Shown here piece by piece: positions 1-15,300 of a stretch of 64,000 bases of DNA (within the stretch, counting starts at the first letter, position 1; the number at the start of each line of letters is the position of its first letter). This DNA is from Adineta vaga (Eukaryota; Animalia; Rotifera): the NCBI GenBank assembly GCA_021613535.1, contig CP075493.1, positions 2,728,001 to 2,792,000 on the forward strand. Direction: 5' to 3'. The position numbers and the translations under genes are program-made. The notes below the pieces were generated by a model. It was not told the DNA's origin. It did no database searches and was given only the letters and a program-made list of their open reading frames with translations.

Positions 1-664
1 AAAATAGAGAAAAAAAAGAGACATATGAATGCCAATATATGTACAAAAGAAGTCGAACTGTGAAGAAAGTTAGAACCAATATATATTGCACACAGGGTCG
101 AGTAAAAGAAAGTTGAAGGAATAAGATGTCTTTCGTCTTCATAGGTTCACTGAAAAAGCACTAAAATAAAGGATGAACGAGAATCTGAGAGAGAGAGAGA
201 GAGAGGGAAAAAGAGAGAAAATGAGTGAAAGAAGACAAGAAGACGCGCACGCAAAAAGAAATTACTGATATTTTTTATACGTGTTTACAAAAAGAAGGTC
301 TTTTTTTTTCTTTTTTTGGGGGATTTTTTTGAGAATTTTTTCGATTTTTTTGTATGTTTTTGTTTCCTGAACGTTGAAGATGAATAGATTAGAGCGTTTT
401 TTTTCGCATAGAGAAAGAAAGACAATAGAAGAGAGAAAGAGAAAAATAGGTAGATGGAAGAAAGAAAGACATGAGTGTTATGCGTTGCTGAGCCGAAAAA
501 AAGAAAAGAAGTTGAACAAAAAATAGATATGTATGATGAGAAAAAAATAAATAGAAGTGAAAGAATAACGATAATAACAACAACAAGAGATATTTGACTG
601 GATTTTTTTTAATCTTCACCATTATTTATATCGTTACACCTCTCCTTACACACACACACCGTTT

Positions 665-2899
<2,235 letters not shown>

Positions 2900-3794
2900 T
2901 GTTTTCTTTCTCGATCACTGACTTGTCACTAAAAAAAACAATTAATTGAAATATAAATAAGAAGAAGAAAACAACAACGACTAATTGGCGAGAGATTTTT
3001 CAGATGTATACCTATTCGTTAAATGATTTATTTCGAATGATAATACTAGAAATAGAGAGAAAGAAAAATATATTTAAATCGAGGGTTCGAACGACTAAAA
3101 CAAAGAAAGAAGAGAGTGTGAACGAAACTCGAATATCATCGTTTCGGCTTATGTTAAATGTGTCTTCGAAAATGACATACGAATAAACGAGAAAAAAAGA
3201 AGAAGAAGAAAACAAGATGTTCTATGAAAAGAATTCTTTATACATACAAGAATAGCGAAGACTATCAGTAGATCGTAAGCAACCGCAAATATACATATAG
3301 AGAATAGATTCTTCTATAGAAGAGTAACAACACGTGTATTTGGACAGGAATGCGCGTTTGTTAAGTAAAGGTAATGATTGGCTCGAGATTGTCCAATCAA
3401 TTCTATGATATCACTCTCTCTCTTTCTTTCTAATAAACAATCAATACGGTAAAGTTTTCAATAACCTGGAGAAAAAAACATCAATGGAATATGAGCATTC
3501 GAAAGACACTGACTTCATAAAACAAATTCTATTGTAATTATTAAGTACAAATATTTTCGATAAAATCGAAAGGAAATTTCTCTTCAATAAATATCATTCA
3601 AACTTTATAATTAAATAACTTCGTCTTTTCAAAAAATAATCAGATTGAATCTTTAGAACACAAACTATTACAATCCATCGATTGTGAAAGAAATAATGAT
3701 ATTCATAACAATAAACTTCATGTTTTCTTTACGTTGAAGATCTGCTTGATAAAATTTTATTTGTTACTAAACACATACAAAACGAAAAGATAGA

Positions 3795-4857
3795 CTAGCG
3801 TGAACGAAAATATGCTCGTTGAGACATAACATCATTTTCGACATTTTCAAAAGCCCATTGATGACCAACAACGAGTAAACCTTCTCGTTCAGCTTTAAAT
3901 GCTTTCGATGGATCTTGTGGCATTGATACGGCAGCCATGTTCATTTGATCTTGCATCATTTTCGTTTGATCAGCAGCATTATTTTCTCCCAGAAGTAAAT
4001 TATTAATACCACGTTGTCCAAAAATATTGATTGCATACCACGATACAGATGATAACCTAGAGAGACATACCGAATTTAATTTTACGAAGTCAATACATTG
4101 AGAATATGTTACTAACCAACTGGCATCAAGTGTTGCTAATTCTACACCACGTTGTAACATTGGTTTAAATCGATATGTTAACGGAAATGGTACTTTTGCT
4201 AGAAAAAAGAAGATTGACTATCAAAAACTGTCGTTTTCTTCAGAATCTCAAACGTGATCTATAAGCTTCAAAATACATACTACAAAGAAAACCGCTAAAT
4301 GCCCAATTGATAACACCACCGATCACAATCATAGGAACCATATTTGAGATATTATTTTTGAGCATTTCAGTCATCATTGTTGGATCTATGAAATTTGATT
4401 TCGAAAAACATCAAATTAAATCATTTCAAATTTCTTTTACCAGTAATTGGATTTCGCATCGGTTGTTGACGAGTTTGTTGTGTTGTAAGATAACCATCTT
4501 CTTCGTTAGCAAAAAAGTGTTTTCGCATAATAAAACCCTAATATAATGCAAAAAAGAAATATACACAAAAGTCAACAAAAATTCCAACCTTCTTTGGAAT
4601 ATATTTTCCATTTTCACGTAAAAGTCGCGTACGAATAAGTGCTTGACTAAAGTATACATTTATATTCAAAATTAAGTACAATCAATTCGATATAAATCAT
4701 CCTATTACCTATCGGCTAATTGTTGTTTATCAACTGGTTTCTCACCAGCTGTAATAATGGAAATATAATGTCGTAACATACCAACAAAAAATGTTATAAC
4801 AACAATAGGCATAAAGACCCAAAATCGAATAGCAGAATCAAGTAATAATTCAACCAT
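3795..4857 (-). CDS. EMC3: ER membrane protein complex subunit 3
   Basis: [78 protein letters not shown]; several short introns. Confidence 0.95.
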
Positions 4858-5098
4858 TTTCGTTTATCTGAAAGAAAATTTGAAAAAAATAATATTCCTC
4901 TTGTTTTTTTCAGAAACAAAATGTCAATCTTTCACTCATCAATATGATTTTGATGAATTCCAATAACACAAATTATTTTCATGTTTAAACGATCATCTCA
5001 TCTGCCATAATAATACAATCGAAGATAGTTTTATACTATTTGATTTGGTTGTTATTAAACATTTTTACTCAATATTATGAAATAAGTACATCTTGTTA

Positions 5099-5926
5099 TC
5101 ACTGAGTATCACCATATGTATAAGAATCTTCATCATCAAAATATTTTTCTTCTTCATCACGTTCACGTATTTTGACATCATCAAGACTTTCATTGTTATC
5201 AATTGAGGCATAATCAATATTGGAATCTTCACCATTGAGAAATTGTTCTAAATTAAAAAACAAAGACGATATGTTTCATAATTCCTGCATAAAGAATCGA
5301 TCATTTCAATATTTACCTTTTTGAATAGCTAGAAATTCTTGTCGATATAAATCTCGTTCTGCACTTGGATATTTGACATCATCATCATTGTCATCTTCAC
5401 TTTCACTATCTTCTTTGTCTTGACATCTTGACTGTTCTTCTTTTTCAAATTCTTGTTCTACTCTTTCATGATGATTCATTGATTCAAGATGTTCCATATA
5501 AAAGTCTGATAATGGACCGTCAGCAGTTCTTTTAACCAGTTGTTTATTAGTGTCATCAGTCTCATATTTTCCAATCATTTGTTCATAAAGTAATGGTGAA
5601 CGTTCCTTCATAGCTTCATCACTAAAATACGTTCCATTCTCTATTAATTGTTGCATGTATGTATAGCGACGATTACTACGTATTTTATGACGATTTGGAA
5701 TAGATATTTGACGAATATAATCAGTATTTGGATCAAAGAATTCTTTTAAATCATCATCAGTTAAAATTGAACCAAAACGATAGATAAAATTCTCTGGATT
5801 AGTCGAATATAAATGATGAAGTATAGTATGTTTTTGTTCATATGTAAAATCTGGTTCATTACGTTGTTGTGATACAATCACTAAATTACTTGCACAAATT
5901 CGATCAAACATAGATGTTATATTCAT
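5099..5926 (-). CDS. CCDC97: Coiled-coil domain-containing protein 97 (DUF2052)
   Basis: NRRYTYMQQLIE..YFSDEAMKERSPLLYEQMIG; exon 2 encodes FLNGEDSNIDYASIDNNESLDD..ERDEEEKYFD. Confidence 0.9.
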
Positions 5927-5972
5927 CTGAAAAGGACGGAAAAAAAGAGAATACAGAAAAAGTCATTCATCA

Positions 5973-6573
5973 TTATTGTTTCGAATCATTTTTAATAAAT
6001 TCTTCCGCTTTTTTTAATATCACTTGCATATTTTCATGTTTTACTAAATCACAAGCTTCTTTTAGATTTGCCCAACTCAAAGCTTGATGTTCATCGGATA
6101 AATCTATCTGTTTTTCAGCATTACGAAGCCGTCCTAGATAATAGTAAACATCTTTGGGTTCTCCTTTCACATTATACGTTGTTTTTTCTACGAATTTATC
6201 ATAATAATCGAAATCATTTTTATCTAAACCAGCTTCTTCTTTTGTTTCACGTTCAGCTGCTTGTATAGGTGATTCACCAGGATCCAAATGACCTAATTCA
6301 ATATCAAAATGATCATATCTGTATCATAAACCGTTCTTTCGAAATGAAATATGAAATAACTACATTTTATTGTTCCTATTCTTCACGGCTGGTCACATCA
6401 GGTGTGATTTATCAATGAAAAATTTCTCTCTCATTAATGAATTCGATTTTCTTGAAATTCTTACCTTTGGGTGGTGTCCAATGATGTTGACCATAGGATG
6501 TTTGTAATAGCAAATATTGAATAGGTTTCTCTGCCAATTGTCGAAATATGATAAATCCTGCGGCTGCACTCAT
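5973..6573 (-). CDS. NUDT2: Asymmetrical Ap4A hydrolase (Nudix)
   Basis: Two exons give [51 protein letters not shown] (Nudix box) and LSDEHQ. Confidence 0.93.
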
Positions 6574-6964
6574 GTAGTTAAATCTACAAAAAAAAGGAAG
6601 AAAAAGAAAAGTTCTATGATCATATTATAACCCATGTCTTATGTGTATATGTATGTATATAATATTGTTTGGTCTCGAAAAGAAAAAAGAATAACAGCAA
6701 CAACAAGCAAAAACAATATTTATTTTGAGACGAAAAGAAAAATGGGCAGAAGAGAAAGAAAATAATGAACACCTACGAATAAAATGAACAATCACACAAA
6801 GTAAACGCGCAAAAGAGTAGAATTGAGACAGATAAAAATAGAAGAAAGTTTTCGTTCATTTCTTTCTTGTTTTGTTTTTTCAAGATGAGACATGATAAAG
6901 ACAAGTAGATGTTACTACTAATAAATGAATCATTTGTTTGTTTTCATTTCTTTTCTAAATTTAT

Positions 6965-9945
6965 TTATTCTATTTTCACAGCAGCATAAATTTTTCGAAC
7001 GAAGATATACGATGCAATAAAACCAATTGTTCCAGTCAAAATCCAAAATGTGAAACAGATCAAAAATGTATAACCAAAATAAAGCATCGATGGAACAAAC
7101 TCAGTGATTTCCAACTAAGACAACAAAACGATTGGTTTGTTTTTTGGTAATGAGAGAAAAAAAGGAGTGTTTCGTTTTCTTACTTTAGTAAAGAAATAAA
7201 AGATTGAATAAGCAAAGACATAGAATGCTGAACCACCAGATGCAATAAATGAGCGCCACCACCAATGATAATCTTCTCCGCATAATTGAAAATATGTTAT
7301 AACAATCGAGATTTGGGAACATGATACTAAAAATGAATGTATGCAATGGAAATATTCGAATCTTTTTTATACTTACTAATAATTATAATGAAGACGAGGA
7401 AGAGAAAACCAAAAAGATAATAATATTGATTTTCCCAAATAGCCGAGAAGATGAAGAATAATTCAATAAACATCGCACCAAATGGAAGAACGCCTAATTA
7501 AACATTTATGTTGAACAAAAAATCTTTTTCAATTATTAAATTTACTTACCAGCCATCAAAGTACTAAAAATCACAAAAAAAACACATCATTCAATAATAT
7601 ATCATTAAGAAGTGAATAGCTTTTCTTATTTACCTTAAAACTGGATGTAAAAACCATTGTTGTTCGGGTACTTGTCTTGGTATCTGATTAGTTCGAACTG
7701 GTTGTTCATAAGGCTGAAAGAAAATCTCATTTATATCAATAGAAATGTTTCTTTTTTTTCATCTCTACATACATGTTTACGGTAACCAAAATAGAAGCCA
7801 AGACAAACTAATGGAAATGAAATACCTAACCACATGACAAGTATGGCAAGCATAGTAGAAAATGGAACAGCACCCGATGAACGTCGTCCCCAGATGAAAA
7901 AATTTAGAAAGAAACCAATACTAAAGACAATTGCTGGATATAATGTTGCAGTCTAAATAACGAACAAAAGAGTTTCAAGAAAATCTTCAATCGTTCTCAT
8001 ATACTAAAGTAGCTGTTTGTTTCCAATTTGAACCTTTGATTGTCTTATAAATTCGACCAGCATAAAAACCAGCAACAAGCCTAAGACGAAAGATTCTTCA
8101 TTGGTGATATTTCATAGTATTTAACTTACCCCATAAATACATAGAGAAAACAAGCTGCTGTTATTAATGCGCCACGTGATGATGGCGAAAGCATTCCAAG
8201 TGCAGCAAAGACTAAAAAATCAAACTTTCAATTAAATTTGACATAAGAAATTCGAAATACAAACCAATGACGATAAATGACATTAGGAATATCTGAATAC
8301 CAGAGCCAATCAATGCGGTGAGAACATTCTTACGACGTGGTGGTCGAAATACATCACCATGTACTCTTTAAATAATCAAATATATATATATATTATTCGA
8401 TAAGAATGTAAATGAAAAGAGATAACATACAATTTCCAACCAGTTTCTTCAGTAACATCATCCTAAAGAAAGAAACAAAACTTGGTTTTAATATTTAGTT
8501 TCTAACTAGAACTAACTGAATCTTCTTGATTGTATCGTGCAATATCACGACGAAGTGTTTTGACAATAATCATTGATAATATTCCGGCAAGAAAGAATAC
8601 CACAATAACTGAATTGACAATAGAAAACCAATGAATTTGTACATCAGTCATGGCTAAATATGTGTCCCAACTATTGAAAAAGAAAACAAATCATTTTATT
8701 TCATAGTATTCAATTTCATTGATTTCTCGAATTCAAGGACTAAAACTTCAGTGATACGATGATGTGGCAGAATTCGAGCGTCATTGTTAGAATGACAATG
8801 ATTCATTTCGCAGAATGACTCATGTAAATAGATTTTTCTTCTCAAGTCCATTGATCTAAATTGAAATACATACCGACTTGCCCAACGTGTTTCACTTGCT
8901 GACCATTCGATTTCATAAGTCATTGTTACTTTATTTTCTTCTAAATAAACCGAATTTTTCAATATAAGGAAATAGTTGTCTCTAAGCATATTTTACCTTT
9001 TGGATTAATTTTTTGAGTGTCTTTACCATTTTGAATTGTACACGTACCATCATCATTCGTTGTTATTCGTTTTGAATCAAAACTTTTCGGTTCAACTTCA
9101 AAACCCACAACACGATAAATGTCTCTTTAAAACATAAAAATTTTTCATATGACTATCACGAAAATATCTATTCTTACTCAGATTCTTTATGATAAAATAA
9201 TTTAATAACTAAATGATTGTTTAAAAACACTTCATCGTCTTGCTTCACATACGTTCCTAATCGATAACCATGTTCATATAAAACATCATGTGTATCTACA
9301 TTTTGAAATTTCGTTGCACACGGAAGATTATCGACAAGACTTAAAAAGACAAAATTAGAATTCATACATTAAACTTTCGTTTCTATTTACAGATGAACAT
9401 AATAATTATTTCGAATACGTTTGCCCAGTGTTTCACTTTGTTCTTTAGATAGAGTAACATCTTTACAAAGTGTATGACATTGTACATTAACATCCATTTC
9501 AATCTAAAGATTTTAAAATAGAATATATGAAGTTCATCATTTCGTTTATTACTTTATATTTTGTATTAACAATTCGATCGCCACGAAGAATTTCTCCTAG
9601 AAAAAAAAATTGATTTTATTTGAACAAAAGAAATATATTCGTTATTCTTACCAAGATTTTCTGATTTGTATTTAGTTCCATTTGCTGGTTTACAATGAAC
9701 ACCAACATCATAATAATCATAGGGTAATTGTGTTTTTGTACTTGTCATTTTAACTGCCTAGAAAAACAGAATTATTATTAAATTCGTACAACGAAATGAA
9801 AAATAAGTCAAGAATTTCTTACTTTAACTTCGACATTTTCTCCTTTCCGAAAATCTAATGGTGCTACACCGGGAATGTAGAATGTCACGAATGGTTGTAT
9901 AAGAAAAACAATGCATATAAAGAGAATAAATACTATATTAGCCAT
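6965..9945 (-). CDS. TM9SF4: Transmembrane 9 superfamily protein, TM9SF4-like
   Basis: Signal peptide followed by [69 protein letters not shown]; C-terminal YAAVKIE; many short introns. Confidence 0.93.
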
Positions 9946-11134
9946 CTGAAATCAATCAAACGTATAAACTAGATGAGTAATATAGATACAAACAATTTTA
10001 ATGGTAGAAAGTAACGGTCTAAACGACAAAATTAGAACGTACAAAAAAATGTCAAAGATAGAAGAAGTAATAAATAAATATGTATGTATGATGCATTATC
10101 TATTTTTGTGTTCCATGTAGAAATGATGTTTATTTACAAAAAATGAAAAAAATGTATTTTTTCGATTTGAAAAAGATTTTGAGAAAAGAAATTTTCAAAA
10201 AAAAAAGATAAGTTTATTATGCACAAGATGTTTTTATTTGTTGCAGGAAATCAATCATTATTCATTATAGAGGGCGTTGCTAAGCAATTATATCGTTAGT
10301 GGCGAAATGCGATCTACAAGGCATCTAACTATTTGTAGGTATCCTATTTTATATACGATAATTATCCGGGATATGATTTTGCGTAGGAGTTTAAACGTTC
10401 TTTTTTCAAAATAGTAATAAAAAAGGTTTTCTCGATTCTTTTGAAAACAGTATGATTGACGAAGTTTTCAATCAATAAGTTCAGTTCATACTACTATGAA
10501 GAATATAAAACATTCAAGAACACTTCGTATAGTATTCTATAATAGAAATATCCTCTTGATATATATATATCTCCTCCGCTATTATCATCAATGAAATGGT
10601 GGGCACTAAGTAGTTGACGCAGACAAGTATACTTATATTAGCGTTCATTTATATAAATAAAAGAAAAAGAAGAATAATTTTATTAATCAAATCCCAAAGG
10701 AAATTAGTTTCATTTGGATAATGAATATCATCATACAAACATTAAATCGAGATTATAGGTCTCAAATATCTGCGACGTAATATAACAAAGCTATAGTTTC
10801 ATTTTAAACATTCATATAAAATTTCCAATGAAATATCTATATCATATCAAATGAGTGGAAACATGCCATTTTCATAACTCTAAACGAATGAGTTCATTGG
10901 TTTCTACTCAAAAATTATATAGCGACAAAAGAAGATCAAATATTTATTCGCGAAATAATCTGAATTATATATTTAGCTTCAAAATAAACATTCTAACAAC
11001 TGACAATTCTTTTCGTGAATTTTTCTTTTTAATTGTACTTGAAGAAATGATCATATTCACACGAATACTTATATATATATATATATACGAACAACAGCGA
11101 CTAGAAAAAAAAGAGAACAATTCAATGGAATAGT

Positions 11135-12377
11135 TTAATTCGATTGAGAAAGACGTGTCGATGTAATTGGCGTTAATCGATGATTGAAATAGATACTATT
11201 TTGTCGACTTTTCGATTGTTTTTGATTTCGTTTGTCAAAATATCGTCGAAAAACTGAACAGCTAAATAAACGAACAACTTCATTACGAAAACGTTGACCA
11301 CATATGGCATAAACAAAGAAATTGACACAAAAAGATGCAAAAAACCAAAGACGAGCTATATTTACAGCATCAAGCATCCATGTTGGTTGTTGTTGATTGA
11401 GCAAAAAACAAAATAACAAGAAATGATAAGGTAAATTGAAAACAAGAAAAACAGTTGAAGCTGCTAAAAGCATTTTCGTGGTTTTAGCTGAAGCTGTTGC
11501 TCGACATTGTGTTAGAACGAATACGAAATGATGCATTGGTATGATATAATGGCGAATGTTTTTGTGCTGTTAATAATGGTATGAACCGATTTGAGACATC
11601 TTTATATCGATGAATCGGTCGTACACATAATAATGAACGATTCTGTCGATGTAACAAACATTTAGCTTCATTATTGTTATTATTTTCGTTCGCCAATTGA
11701 GATGAATGAACACTATCCGAAGCGGATTGTCTTGATGAATTTGTTGATGAAGAATGTATTGGTAATTTTTGCATATATGCAAGTTTTCCTTTTAATTTAC
11801 AAACAATAGCTAAATTCATACATGTAATCATTGTAAATGGAATAATAAATGTAAACAATGTATCAAAAACAAGAAATGGAAATAATAATTTCTTCTGTCG
11901 ATCTTCTTCACAATGAACAACATTCGTTGTATTTGAACGTAATTTTGTTGTTGTCACTGGAAATGATAACGAGTAGAATATTGATGCGAATAATAATAAT
12001 GTCAATGCTAAAATTCGATTTGTACGTTGTTTTAAAAATGCTGTAGATTTCATGGGAAAGAAAACGGCAATTAGACGATGACTTGTATAAGCCAATGTAA
12101 AATTTGATGAAAGAAATGAAGCTATATGACTTAGATAGATAGTTAGCATACAAACAGGTGCGGTCATGATTGGAACATTCAATTCATCGAGAAAAACAAT
12201 AACAAGAATAAGAATAAATAAAAGATCAGTAATAGCAAGACAAGTAAGAAAAAAAGATGAACGTAATGATCGCAAACGTCGTTGTGAAAAGACGAATATT
12301 GTTGTTGTATTACCAATAAGACCAGTTAAAGCAATGGCTATATAATAGATAAGATGAAGTTTGGATGGTAAGGCCAT
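11135..12377 (-). CDS. Class A (rhodopsin-like) orphan peptide GPCR, split over two reading frames
   Basis: TM1 GLIGN, TM2 LAITDLL, TM3 SHRLIAVFFP, TM5 FIIPF, TM6 FLVFNLP, TM7 NFFVYAICGQRFR. The frame change near 11490-11525 needs a micro-intron or a frameshift. The start may lie in an upstream exon. Confidence 0.8.
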
Positions 12378-15300
12378 TCTTGCACTTCCAACACGAGAAG
12401 TAAATGATGATAATGTTGAAGATTGTGAAGTAGATAAAGTCACAGGCAAGAAAATTGACGTTAATGAGACAAGAGAATTGTTAGATACATTGAATGCATT
12501 AAATGAACTGTGAATAAAGAAAATAGAGAAATATTCTTTATATGTTATAAATAAAACGTTTGTATATATATATATATATGTTTGGTCTTTTAATTCTTCT
12601 CGCACTATCTCACTAATTAGCATTAAATGCTAATAACGAATGGAGAAAAAAAACGATCTTTTTTCAATTATGTACTCAAGTCTACATTGTATTTAATACC
12701 TAGGAAGAAGAGGAAAAAAAAGCAAAGTAACATGAATATAACTTTACCTTTACTTTTACTTATTAATAAATTTAGTTAAAAACAAGAACATCTAAATCTA
12801 AGTTTGGTTTGAAAAAAAAACCCCGGAATTATTTATTTTCTATTCAATATCTTATGGTAATTAGTCGAGAAGATGGAGATACATTTCCACAGCTCTTACG
12901 CATCAACTTTGCATGTTTTGCATACTAAATGAAAAGTATCTTTTATCATTGTTCTATCAGAACATTCTAATACTTTTAATTCTATATTAATTATCTATTG
13001 AAAGAACATAACCGATTTTAATCTTATATATGTAATTATTTCATTAACAAACCATTAGACATCGAAACAAAAATCTCAAGACGTATTCATTATGAATTCA
13101 AAAAGAAAATCTTCTCATCTAAATCTGTTTGTTCAATGAAACATGTTACTTTTCGTCACTCTCATCCTCAATTGATAGGTGTAATTCACCAGGTATATTT
13201 ATGTTCATTTTTTTATCTTAACTGAAAAAGAAAATAAATTTATCAGCTTAAGTTCTCGTGTTCTTTTTTTTTCTATTTTACTTATGAATACAATGAACGC
13301 AATTGAAAATCTTAGTCATTATCAGAAGATATTCGACATGATAAACGATGTTTTCTTTTCTTCTAGATACTGTCTTATGTCATGTGTCAGATCATTTTAC
13401 TTCTCCTAGTCGTGACAACTGGAGAAAAAAAAGTATTTTATAATTACAAACCAAAGAGAAATAAAAGTTTATAGAGACTAGTTAGAAAGAACATCTAGAC
13501 TTTTGACTTGATATGCAGATAAACGCAAAGGACATGTTACCTATTAGTATTTATCTCGCATGATATTATGTGTTTGATTTTGTTTTTCTTTTTCGTCGAT
13601 TGATTAATCGTTTCGATCAAAAAAATCTATCAATCTTCTATACTTTTATTGCGGTTATGTATAGATACAAACAAAAGTACGTCGTTAGCTACACACAACT
13701 TTTGATGATTTGTCCTCTTCTATGGTAACTCGATTATATTATCATATACGAGCAAACAATGTATAATAACAAATATGTAACAATGTAAATAGAGCGAAGG
13801 TTACGAAGTCGAATTTCCAAGGTTTTTCTTATACAATTAATGATCAATTTATAAGAGTATCATTACAAACAAACTTACATTCGATACTGGTTAACTATTA
13901 TATCATTCTAATGAACGATGTTTATGTTATATAGATTTTTCTTTTCAAAATGAAGACACCTACACAACTAATACATTATTAGCTATTCATTCACACGCAT
14001 GTACTTCGAAATCTGAGTTTGAGATGTCGAGTTTTTTTTTTGGATCTACTTAACTTCTCATGTTCTTATATTCTTTTTCTTAGTGTTGCTACTTTGTTGA
14101 TTGATAAATAATAATCTTATTCTAGTTGTAAATACTTTCATGTAATGGAATAAAATCAAACAAAGTCAAATTTTATTACCTTGATGTCAGCATTCTTTTC
14201 TTGAAACTAAGACTGAGAAAATATCGTTTATTCGATTTGTTTAAACATCAGTTTTCTCTATTGATAAAGTGATAAAGTCCAGAAAAACACTGTTATGAAT
14301 ACAAATTTACATCTTGACATGCTTAAAATTAGATGATAGAAGAAATATACTTAAAAGTCATGTCTGTTAGTTCTAGTTAAGATGATCTACTTCATCATAT
14401 TGTCTTAATGAACTTTATTCCGTTGATGAACTTAGATAAAAGTGAAGAGAAAGGACATGCTGAGAGAGAAAGGTGCATAATTATCATTGTGACACTCACG
14501 TCGCGATATTTTCAGTCCATTGAATCTTCGATAGGCCATACGTATAGAATGGTTTTATTGGGAATAGTTGTGAATCAATAGGATACAAATCTTCAATTGT
14601 TGAGTATGAAAGATGTAGAAAATGGAAATACAAGAAAACGCTCATTGTAAAAGATCGAAAGAATTCTGTATGATTTGCTTATCGAAACGAAAGAATGTAT
14701 TTAGATGGGCAAAAAAAAAGGAAAGGGAAAAAAACATGATTTGAATGATGTATTGAATATGTCAATCGCTGAATTTCCAATTAGTCACACATGAATATAC
14801 TTGTCGAATTTGATTAATATCAATTTTCTTATTTTTACGTCGAAAAAATGATTTAAGAACTTCTAAGGGCTAAGTTAAGTGAAGTAGTTTAAATTCTCAA
14901 AAGAATAATTTCATTAGAAGATACAACGAGAAAAATACTCATTTAGTTCTTTCATTTTTGCTAATTCTTATAATTATACGACATAATTACAATATGAGAC
15001 ACATCAAAACAAACAACTACGAATATAAATATGAGTTTTTCGTCGTTTTCTTTTCTCTTTATTTTTACCTAAAAAAAGTCTATTTTCTACTTATTTTTGC
15101 ACTGATATAGTATATACGGAATTTATCTTGTAATTATAGTTTAGATAGTATCAAAAACCGCCTTTAGCAAAAAAGATCAAATAGCATTTAATATAGCTCA
15201 TTTATTGTAATACATTCTTCCTCATTTTAAATAAATGTTTATTTTCTATCAATAATCTTGTTGTTTTTATAGTTCATATAGTTGAAATACAAATTCTTAC

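Follow-up and report, generated by a model that had tools for sequence, protein, structure and literature searches.

A probable operon of NUDT2, CCDC97 and EMC3 resolved by spliced-leader trans-splicing in Adineta vaga, a bdelloid rotifer

Trans-splicing with a spliced leader has reportedly been known in rotifers since 2005, when Pouchkina-Stantcheva and Tunnacliffe (Mol Biol Evol 22:1482) are said to have described the rotifer leader, not operons. The closest described systems in which such leaders resolve operons are those of the tunicates Ciona intestinalis and Oikopleura dioica, the SL1-type and SL2-type operons of Caenorhabditis elegans, and those of the chaetognath Paraspadella gotoi, defined as same-strand genes less than 250 nucleotides (nt) apart with leader reads, where no operon-specific leader was found (PMC12460157). 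Operons of rotifers were entered as 'ND' in 2008 (PMC2481426) and as 'not reported' in 2021 (PMC7986045), and a 2025 paper names rotifers in passing, with no data, among the lineages showing trans-splicing and operonic transcription (PMC12460157); no report of a rotifer operon was found in the literature searched. Here, we analysed a cluster of four genes, TM9SF, NUDT2, CCDC97 and EMC3, in a window of 64,000 nt of the Adineta vaga genome (contig CP075493.1, positions 2,728,001 to 2,792,000; all coordinates below are those of the window unless another locus is named). The evidence suggests that NUDT2, CCDC97 and EMC3 probably form an operon whose messages are separated by spliced-leader trans-splicing.

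The four genes, which are unrelated housekeeping genes, lie head to tail on the minus strand. Protein family searches (Pfam), carried out per exon, assigned several exons of the first gene (6965-9945; ATG at 9945, stop at 6965), which is interrupted by many short introns, to the EMP70 family, identifying it as TM9SF. The second gene (5973-6573; ATG at 6573, stop at 5973) consists of two exons separated by an intron at 6291-6462 and matches NUDIX; when compared with solved structures, its second exon is matched best by Ap4A hydrolases (e.g., 3u53, 1xsa, 1kt9), in agreement with NUDT2. The third gene, CCDC97 (5099-5926; ATG at 5926, stop at 5099), has two exons flanking an intron at 5248-5316 and is recognised by CCD97-like_C (E 3.5e-21), one of its exons being 99% identical to an A. 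vaga protein at NCBI. EMC3 (3795-4857; ATG at 4857, stop at 3795; EMC3_TMCO1) would be the last cistron. The stop-to-ATG gaps amount to 391 nt between TM9SF and NUDT2, 46 nt between NUDT2 and CCDC97, and 241 nt between CCDC97 and EMC3. CCDC97 and NUDT2 are each single-copy in the assembly, so that no ohnologue comparison is possible. A NUDT2-CCDC97 fusion protein was ruled out, given that three in-frame stops follow NUDT2 and that the 46-nt gap changes the frame, and a scan of 3600-11200 against Rfam returned nothing relevant.

Every one of the four start codons is preceded by an acceptor. Upstream of TM9SF, the motif tttcag (9946-9951) abuts the ATG, and this YAG/ATG arrangement (Y, pyrimidine) is kept in four species. 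The NUDT2 acceptor (6584-6610) comprises a pyrimidine tract ending in tttttgtag, with its AG at 6585-6584 and 10 nt left before the ATG. The 46-nt spacer between NUDT2 and CCDC97 (5927-5972) is a pyrimidine tract that ends in ccttttcag, the final cag directly abutting the CCDC97 start codon. For EMC3, the motif ttctttcag likewise stands 10 nt before the ATG, the AG (4869-4868) and the 10-nt 5' untranslated region (UTR) together covering 4858-4869. A comparable acceptor-like motif occurs no more than 12 nt upstream of 6.7% of all ATGs in the window, which places the chance probability of finding it at four of four at about 2e-5. An earlier reading of this DNA made from the sequence alone, in which these genes formed a one-strand cluster with 391, 46 and 241 nt from each stop to the next ATG and with acceptors 0 or 10 nt before all four ATGs, is borne out, the strand being the minus strand.

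Transcripts of the locus were followed in contigs from four runs of four studies (X1, X17, X19 and X5), built from 31-mers. Among the joints listed, all are minus-strand GT..AG introns, apart from one compound joint over a 13-nt micro-exon of TM9SF, and these minus-strand joints demonstrate that all four runs are RNA. At 6585, contigs of X1 and X19, belonging to two studies, terminate in nine loose letters (CTTACCAAG on the minus strand) followed by AG; at 4869, a contig of X19, from one study, terminates in ten (ACTTACCAAG on the minus strand), again followed by AG. Together with the ambiguous AG, the loose letters constitute the last 11-12 nt of the spliced leader, matching the 3' end of the genomic leader genes, and these visible letters (the last 11-12 only) are the same at NUDT2 and EMC3. 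The leader is accordingly joined to position 6583 in the NUDT2 message and to position 4867 in the EMC3 message, so that the RNA documents the use of two acceptors out of four. Since the leader is joined exactly at these AGs, neither of them serves as the cis-acceptor of an upstream donor. The sequence-only reading, which expected a spliced leader at all four acceptors and counted cis-splicing to upstream donors among the findings that would refute it, is therefore upheld at NUDT2 (X1, X19) and at EMC3 (X19), and no leader was seen at CCDC97 or TM9SF in the contigs of the four runs.

The genome contains the genes from which this leader could derive. A 14-mer combining the 3' part of the leader with the GT donor was searched across the assembly (6 contigs, 100.8 Mb) and yielded 53 genomic copies, versus 0 and 2 on the two strands for a reversed control. 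The leader gene copies read GCTTATTACAACTTACCAAGAG, then GTAAAT, with minor variants (e.g., ...TTAAAACTT... versus ...TTACAACTT...), the leader exon ending in ...TTACAACTTACCAAGAG before the GT. The leader RNA is predicted to fold with z = -4.4, the donor lying within the first stem. These genes thus combine multiple copies, a leader exon with a GT donor, and a structured 3' part. Most of them are arranged as head-to-head pairs with donors about 167 nt apart, with clusters on contigs C2 and C5, and in the pair at L002 1330-1515 one partner has the variant leader (...TTAAAACTT...). The end of the genomic leader exon agrees with the 23-nt bdelloid leader reportedly published in 2005.

The RNA is also continuous from gene to gene. 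Record 1 of X1 (2311 nt) opens with the leader, continues through NUDT2 and across the 46-nt gap to CCDC97, and reaches EMC3 after crossing the 241-nt gap; the five cis-introns of the aligned stretch are removed. The 46-nt gap is spanned by contigs in X1, X17 (record 5) and X19 (record 9), and the 241-nt gap by contigs in X1 and X17 (record 4). The NUDT2 intron joint was recovered in three of the four runs, X5 having no NUDT2 coverage, and the CCDC97 intron joint, the EMC3 joints and GT..AG joints of TM9SF were recovered in all four. Furthermore, Logan RNA contigs of a second species (L019 and L020) carry spliced NUDT2, 37 nt, and spliced CCDC97. Contamination with genomic DNA was rejected as the source of the intergenic coverage, since depth falls to zero upstream of TM9SF (9971-10150) in all four runs. 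Of the polycistronic unit of four genes that had been proposed from the sequence, the part downstream of TM9SF is thus supported by RNA continuity over the 46- and 241-nt gaps, which in 31-mer contigs is local, and the inclusion of TM9SF is doubtful.

Orthologous loci were collected through relatives of CCDC97. Some of these (L021, L022, L023-25, L026 and L028) are DNA contigs with introns and were used for synteny only; L027, a monocistronic SMART cDNA from a non-bdelloid, was set aside as uninformative. A. steineri, Rotaria sordida, R. magnacalcarata and longer environmental contigs keep, completely or partly depending on the reach of the locus, the order GPCR (G protein-coupled receptor) > TM9SF > NUDT2 > CCDC97 > EMC3 > poly(A)-polymerase-like gene, the flanking genes being shared with A. 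vaga; the short contigs hold only parts of the core. Beyond A. steineri and the two Rotaria species, at least four further bdelloid sequences keep the cluster order. In the eight loci with an intact NUDT2, the gap between NUDT2 and CCDC97 measures 46, 46, 64, 41, 37, 39, 37 and 30 nt and is always a pyrimidine tract ending in YAG at the ATG; in the JGI contigs, open reading frame calls give 37 nt. The CCDC97-EMC3 gap ranges from 46 to 362 nt across bdelloids, reaching its lower values in L028 (54 nt) and L026 (46 nt), and in the latter the EMC3 acceptor ends 9 nt past the CCDC97 stop. In spacer alignments, TAG/AT at the NUDT2 acceptor and TTTCAG/AT at the EMC3 acceptor are each invariant in six lineages, the EMC3 motif being also kept in L026 and L028 and forming the sole invariant stretch of the CCDC97-EMC3 spacer, whose other invariant columns are scattered single bases. 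The compact layout and the acceptors first read from the A. vaga sequence are therefore conserved across bdelloid families.

Several observations weigh against an operon of NUDT2, CCDC97 and EMC3. Contigs assembled from 31-mers attest local continuity only, and overlapping separate transcripts would give the same contigs. Single-nucleotide polymorphisms (SNPs; 6688, 4997 and 6096) occur where contigs end at 6689, 4998 and 6095-6097; as they fall on SNPs and carry no poly(A) tails, these ends were rejected as poly(A) sites. The leader end was found neither at CCDC97 (5927) nor at TM9SF (9946), an absence that at 5927 is weak evidence because the leader would there form a branch of less than 60 nt off an internal node of the assembly graph, and such a branch readily disappears. 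Small promoters could fit into the 241-nt and 391-nt spacers, and in the TM9SF-NUDT2 spacer there are TATA-like runs and, about 55 nt ahead of the acceptor, a semi-conserved block. Finally, gene order is equally kept for the neighbouring GPCR, poly(A)-polymerase-like and kinase genes, which are separated by spacers of 0.9-1.4 kb, and for this reason synteny was rejected as proof of an operon.

A first alternative is that the cluster consists of compact independent genes, each with its own promoter in the upstream gene or spacer, the leader merely trimming short outrons and the overlapping 3' UTRs and outrons joining the contigs. Trans-splicing of monocistronic genes is indeed common in leader-bearing animals. 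However, NUDT2 and CCDC97 are separated by 30-64 nt wherever NUDT2 is intact, which agrees with the earlier claim that the 46-nt pyrimidine tract ending in CAG/ATG leaves no room for a promoter and implies that a CCDC97 promoter would need to sit within the NUDT2 coding sequence. The NUDT2 intron, of just 49, 51, 52 and 60 nt in four lineages, is not a conserved promoter site either, two lineages have as little as 46-54 nt between CCDC97 and EMC3, and the spacer alignments revealed no conserved block other than the acceptor before CCDC97 or EMC3. Independent transcription of the three genes consequently appears unlikely to us.

A second alternative starts from the missing leader end at 5927 and proposes that NUDT2 and CCDC97 share a stable, uncut two-gene message, the leader being added at NUDT2 and EMC3 only and CCDC97 being translated through re-initiation or leaky scanning. 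Contigs spanning the 46-nt gap in every run with NUDT2 coverage, and the equivalent gap in contigs of the second species, would suit such a message. Nevertheless, the pyrimidine tract and the YAG before CCDC97 are kept in every lineage, even in L026, which has no NUDT2, and in R. magnacalcarata, where NUDT2 is a pseudogene. This retention argues that the AG is used as an acceptor, and the ease with which so short a leader branch is lost from contigs makes its absence weak evidence. We regard an uncut two-gene message as quite improbable.

Under the operon model that we favour for NUDT2, CCDC97 and EMC3, a single promoter would serve the three genes, and transcription would start upstream of NUDT2, either in the TM9SF-NUDT2 spacer or in the conserved region upstream of TM9SF. 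One primary transcript would then extend over NUDT2, CCDC97 and EMC3 and be cut into single-gene messages as the rotifer leader is trans-spliced to the AG located 0-10 nt before each start codon. CCDC97 would take the leader at its cag/ATG junction, and the NUDT2 message would end inside the 46-nt spacer, beside the CCDC97 acceptor. If transcription started upstream of TM9SF, this gene would be the first cistron, joined to NUDT2 through an SL2-like junction composed of a poly(A) signal, about 115 nt, and an acceptor.

The distribution of poly(A) signals bears on both ends of the proposed unit. According to a hexamer scan, the canonical AATAAA is conserved after TM9SF and EMC3 and mostly absent after NUDT2 and CCDC97. 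Downstream of EMC3 it lies 36 nt past the stop in A. vaga and 34-80 nt past the stop in six lineages, and in the poorly conserved CCDC97-EMC3 spacer upstream of the EMC3 acceptor (4870-5098) the scan found no canonical poly(A) hexamer. This distribution fits a unit that ends at EMC3, with statistics that are weak in AT-rich DNA. Downstream of TM9SF, AATAAA (6719-6724) and the first 12 nt of a GU-rich tail (6707-6718) form 18 nt (6707-6724) that are invariant in six lineages and lie about 115 nt before the NUDT2 acceptor; counted from the TM9SF stop, the hexamer lies at +232 to +252 in six lineages, whereas R. magnacalcarata has it at +198. This invariant signal with its GU-rich tail, together with the fact that the contig of one run only reads toward the NUDT2 acceptor, renders the membership of TM9SF doubtful: TM9SF may be the first cistron, but we lean against it.

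Nonetheless, all four genes might belong to a single operon, with the conserved region upstream of TM9SF as its sole promoter. Record 6 of X17 carries the TM9SF 3' UTR from the stop on to 6595, approximately 100 nt past the poly(A) signal, where it stops 10 nt before the NUDT2 acceptor. The public annotation of R. sordida joins EMP70 and NUDIX in one gene model. In addition, a poly(A) signal with a GU-rich tail that is followed, after about 115 nt, by an acceptor resembles SL2-type junctions of C. elegans, and the TM9SF acceptor abuts its ATG in the four species mentioned above. Conversely, no contig of the four runs crosses the NUDT2 acceptor from upstream, the TM9SF contigs of three runs stopping at 6689-6731; the strong invariant poly(A) signal suits a separate gene equally well; and the TM9SF-NUDT2 spacer has room for a promoter. 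A four-gene operon is thus conceivable, although it is not the reading that we would put first.

Alignments revealed two conserved non-coding blocks on the minus strand upstream of TM9SF, ATCTTTGAC at 10051-10059 and TAAATAAACA at 10127-10136, both invariant in A. vaga, A. steineri, R. sordida and R. magnacalcarata; the region 10051-10136 could be a candidate promoter for the cluster. Within the TM9SF-NUDT2 spacer, a further block at 6773-6798 (minus strand), TGTGTGATTGTTC.TTTATTCGTAG, hardly varies between Adineta and Rotaria, and even L026, which lacks NUDT2, has a version of it. Together with the block at 6707-6724, it could represent a regulatory element of the 3' UTR or a promoter element for the downstream genes.

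The cluster shows lineage-specific changes at NUDT2. The NUDT2 copy of R. magnacalcarata at this locus (L016 6919-8290) is a pseudogene: several in-frame stops interrupt its two exons, but it still stands between TM9SF and CCDC97, and CCDC97 has retained its acceptor. In the environmental bdelloid contig L026 (positions 1-170), whose CCDC97 is 61% identical, the block resembling the TM9SF 3' UTR is followed by CCDC97 with no NUDT2 in between, and the CCDC97 acceptor stands 5 nt before the ATG; NUDT2 would have been either lost from the cluster or inserted into it in some lineage. Public annotations contain fused gene models at this locus, EMP70 with NUDIX in R. sordida and NUDIX exon 1 with CCDC97 in R. 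magnacalcarata.

The co-directional gene run exceeds the cluster, comprising on the minus strand of A. vaga (1-12623) the GPCR gene, TM9SF, NUDT2, CCDC97, EMC3 and the poly(A)-polymerase-like gene. A protein kinase gene comes next in three relatives (L013, L018 and L028), and in L028 an extra 4HBT thioesterase gene is located between GPCR and TM9SF. About 860 nt past the EMC3 stop, at 2918-2933 (minus strand), a conserved ttttag followed by TGACAAGTCA (one mismatch in A. vaga) precedes the next downstream gene, which in relatives is poly(A)-polymerase/TUTase-like (TUTase, terminal uridylyltransferase); this is probably a further trans-splice acceptor with a conserved 5' UTR. As for the RNA contigs themselves, the 13-nt micro-exon of TM9SF (7551-7563, minus strand) is spliced in all four runs and sits inside the joint at 7494-7634. 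At 5975, three in-frame nucleotides are inserted in contigs of X17 and X19, giving an extra CAA (Gln) codon just before the NUDT2 stop; this is probably the other allele. One contig of X5 bears 11 non-leader loose letters at 4862, inside the EMC3 5' UTR, and contigs of X17 diverge at 6207 (NUDT2 exon 2) and 8374 (TM9SF intron).

A documented rotifer operon would add a phylum to the patchy distribution of animal operons and would bear on the debate over whether trans-splicing repeatedly opens the way to operons. It would also account for the fused bdelloid gene models, and the joint transcription of housekeeping genes has a bearing on the proposal that recovery from arrest is faster with operons; in bdelloids, the arrest in question would be desiccation. 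More tentatively, the locus could be an ancient operon common to Adinetidae and Philodinidae that combines, with a single leader, an SL2-like junction (TM9SF > NUDT2) and abutting, tunicate-like junctions (NUDT2 > CCDC97 and, in some lineages, CCDC97 > EMC3), its layout being under such constraint that R. magnacalcarata has kept even a dead NUDT2 cistron in position. If true, this would represent an ancient operon in a phylum where none has been described.

When compared with described systems, the cluster resembles the tunicate operons of C. intestinalis and O. dioica and the SL1-type operons of C. elegans, with which it shares one leader family at all the acceptors where a leader was seen, little or no intercistronic region (46 nt separate the NUDT2 stop from an ATG directly preceded by its acceptor), and a content of unrelated housekeeping genes. 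It differs from them in phylum, here Rotifera, in the leader sequence, and in the leader gene family; here, the leader of CCDC97 and the poly(A) site of NUDT2 are presumed. The SL2-type operons of C. elegans offer a parallel at the TM9SF-NUDT2 junction, where AAUAAA and a GU-rich tail are followed after about 115 nt by an acceptor that takes the leader; co-transcription of TM9SF and NUDT2 is putative here. SL2-type operons have a specialised downstream leader, and no evidence of one was found in the last 11-12 leader letters, which are the same at NUDT2 and EMC3. The operons of P. gotoi come from a gnathiferan relative in which trans-splicing is likewise widespread; their leader is different, however, and the authors view trans-splicing as independently evolved (PMC12460157). 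That study (PMC12460157) drew on genome-wide read counts and Iso-Seq, whereas the present one reads a single locus through contigs.

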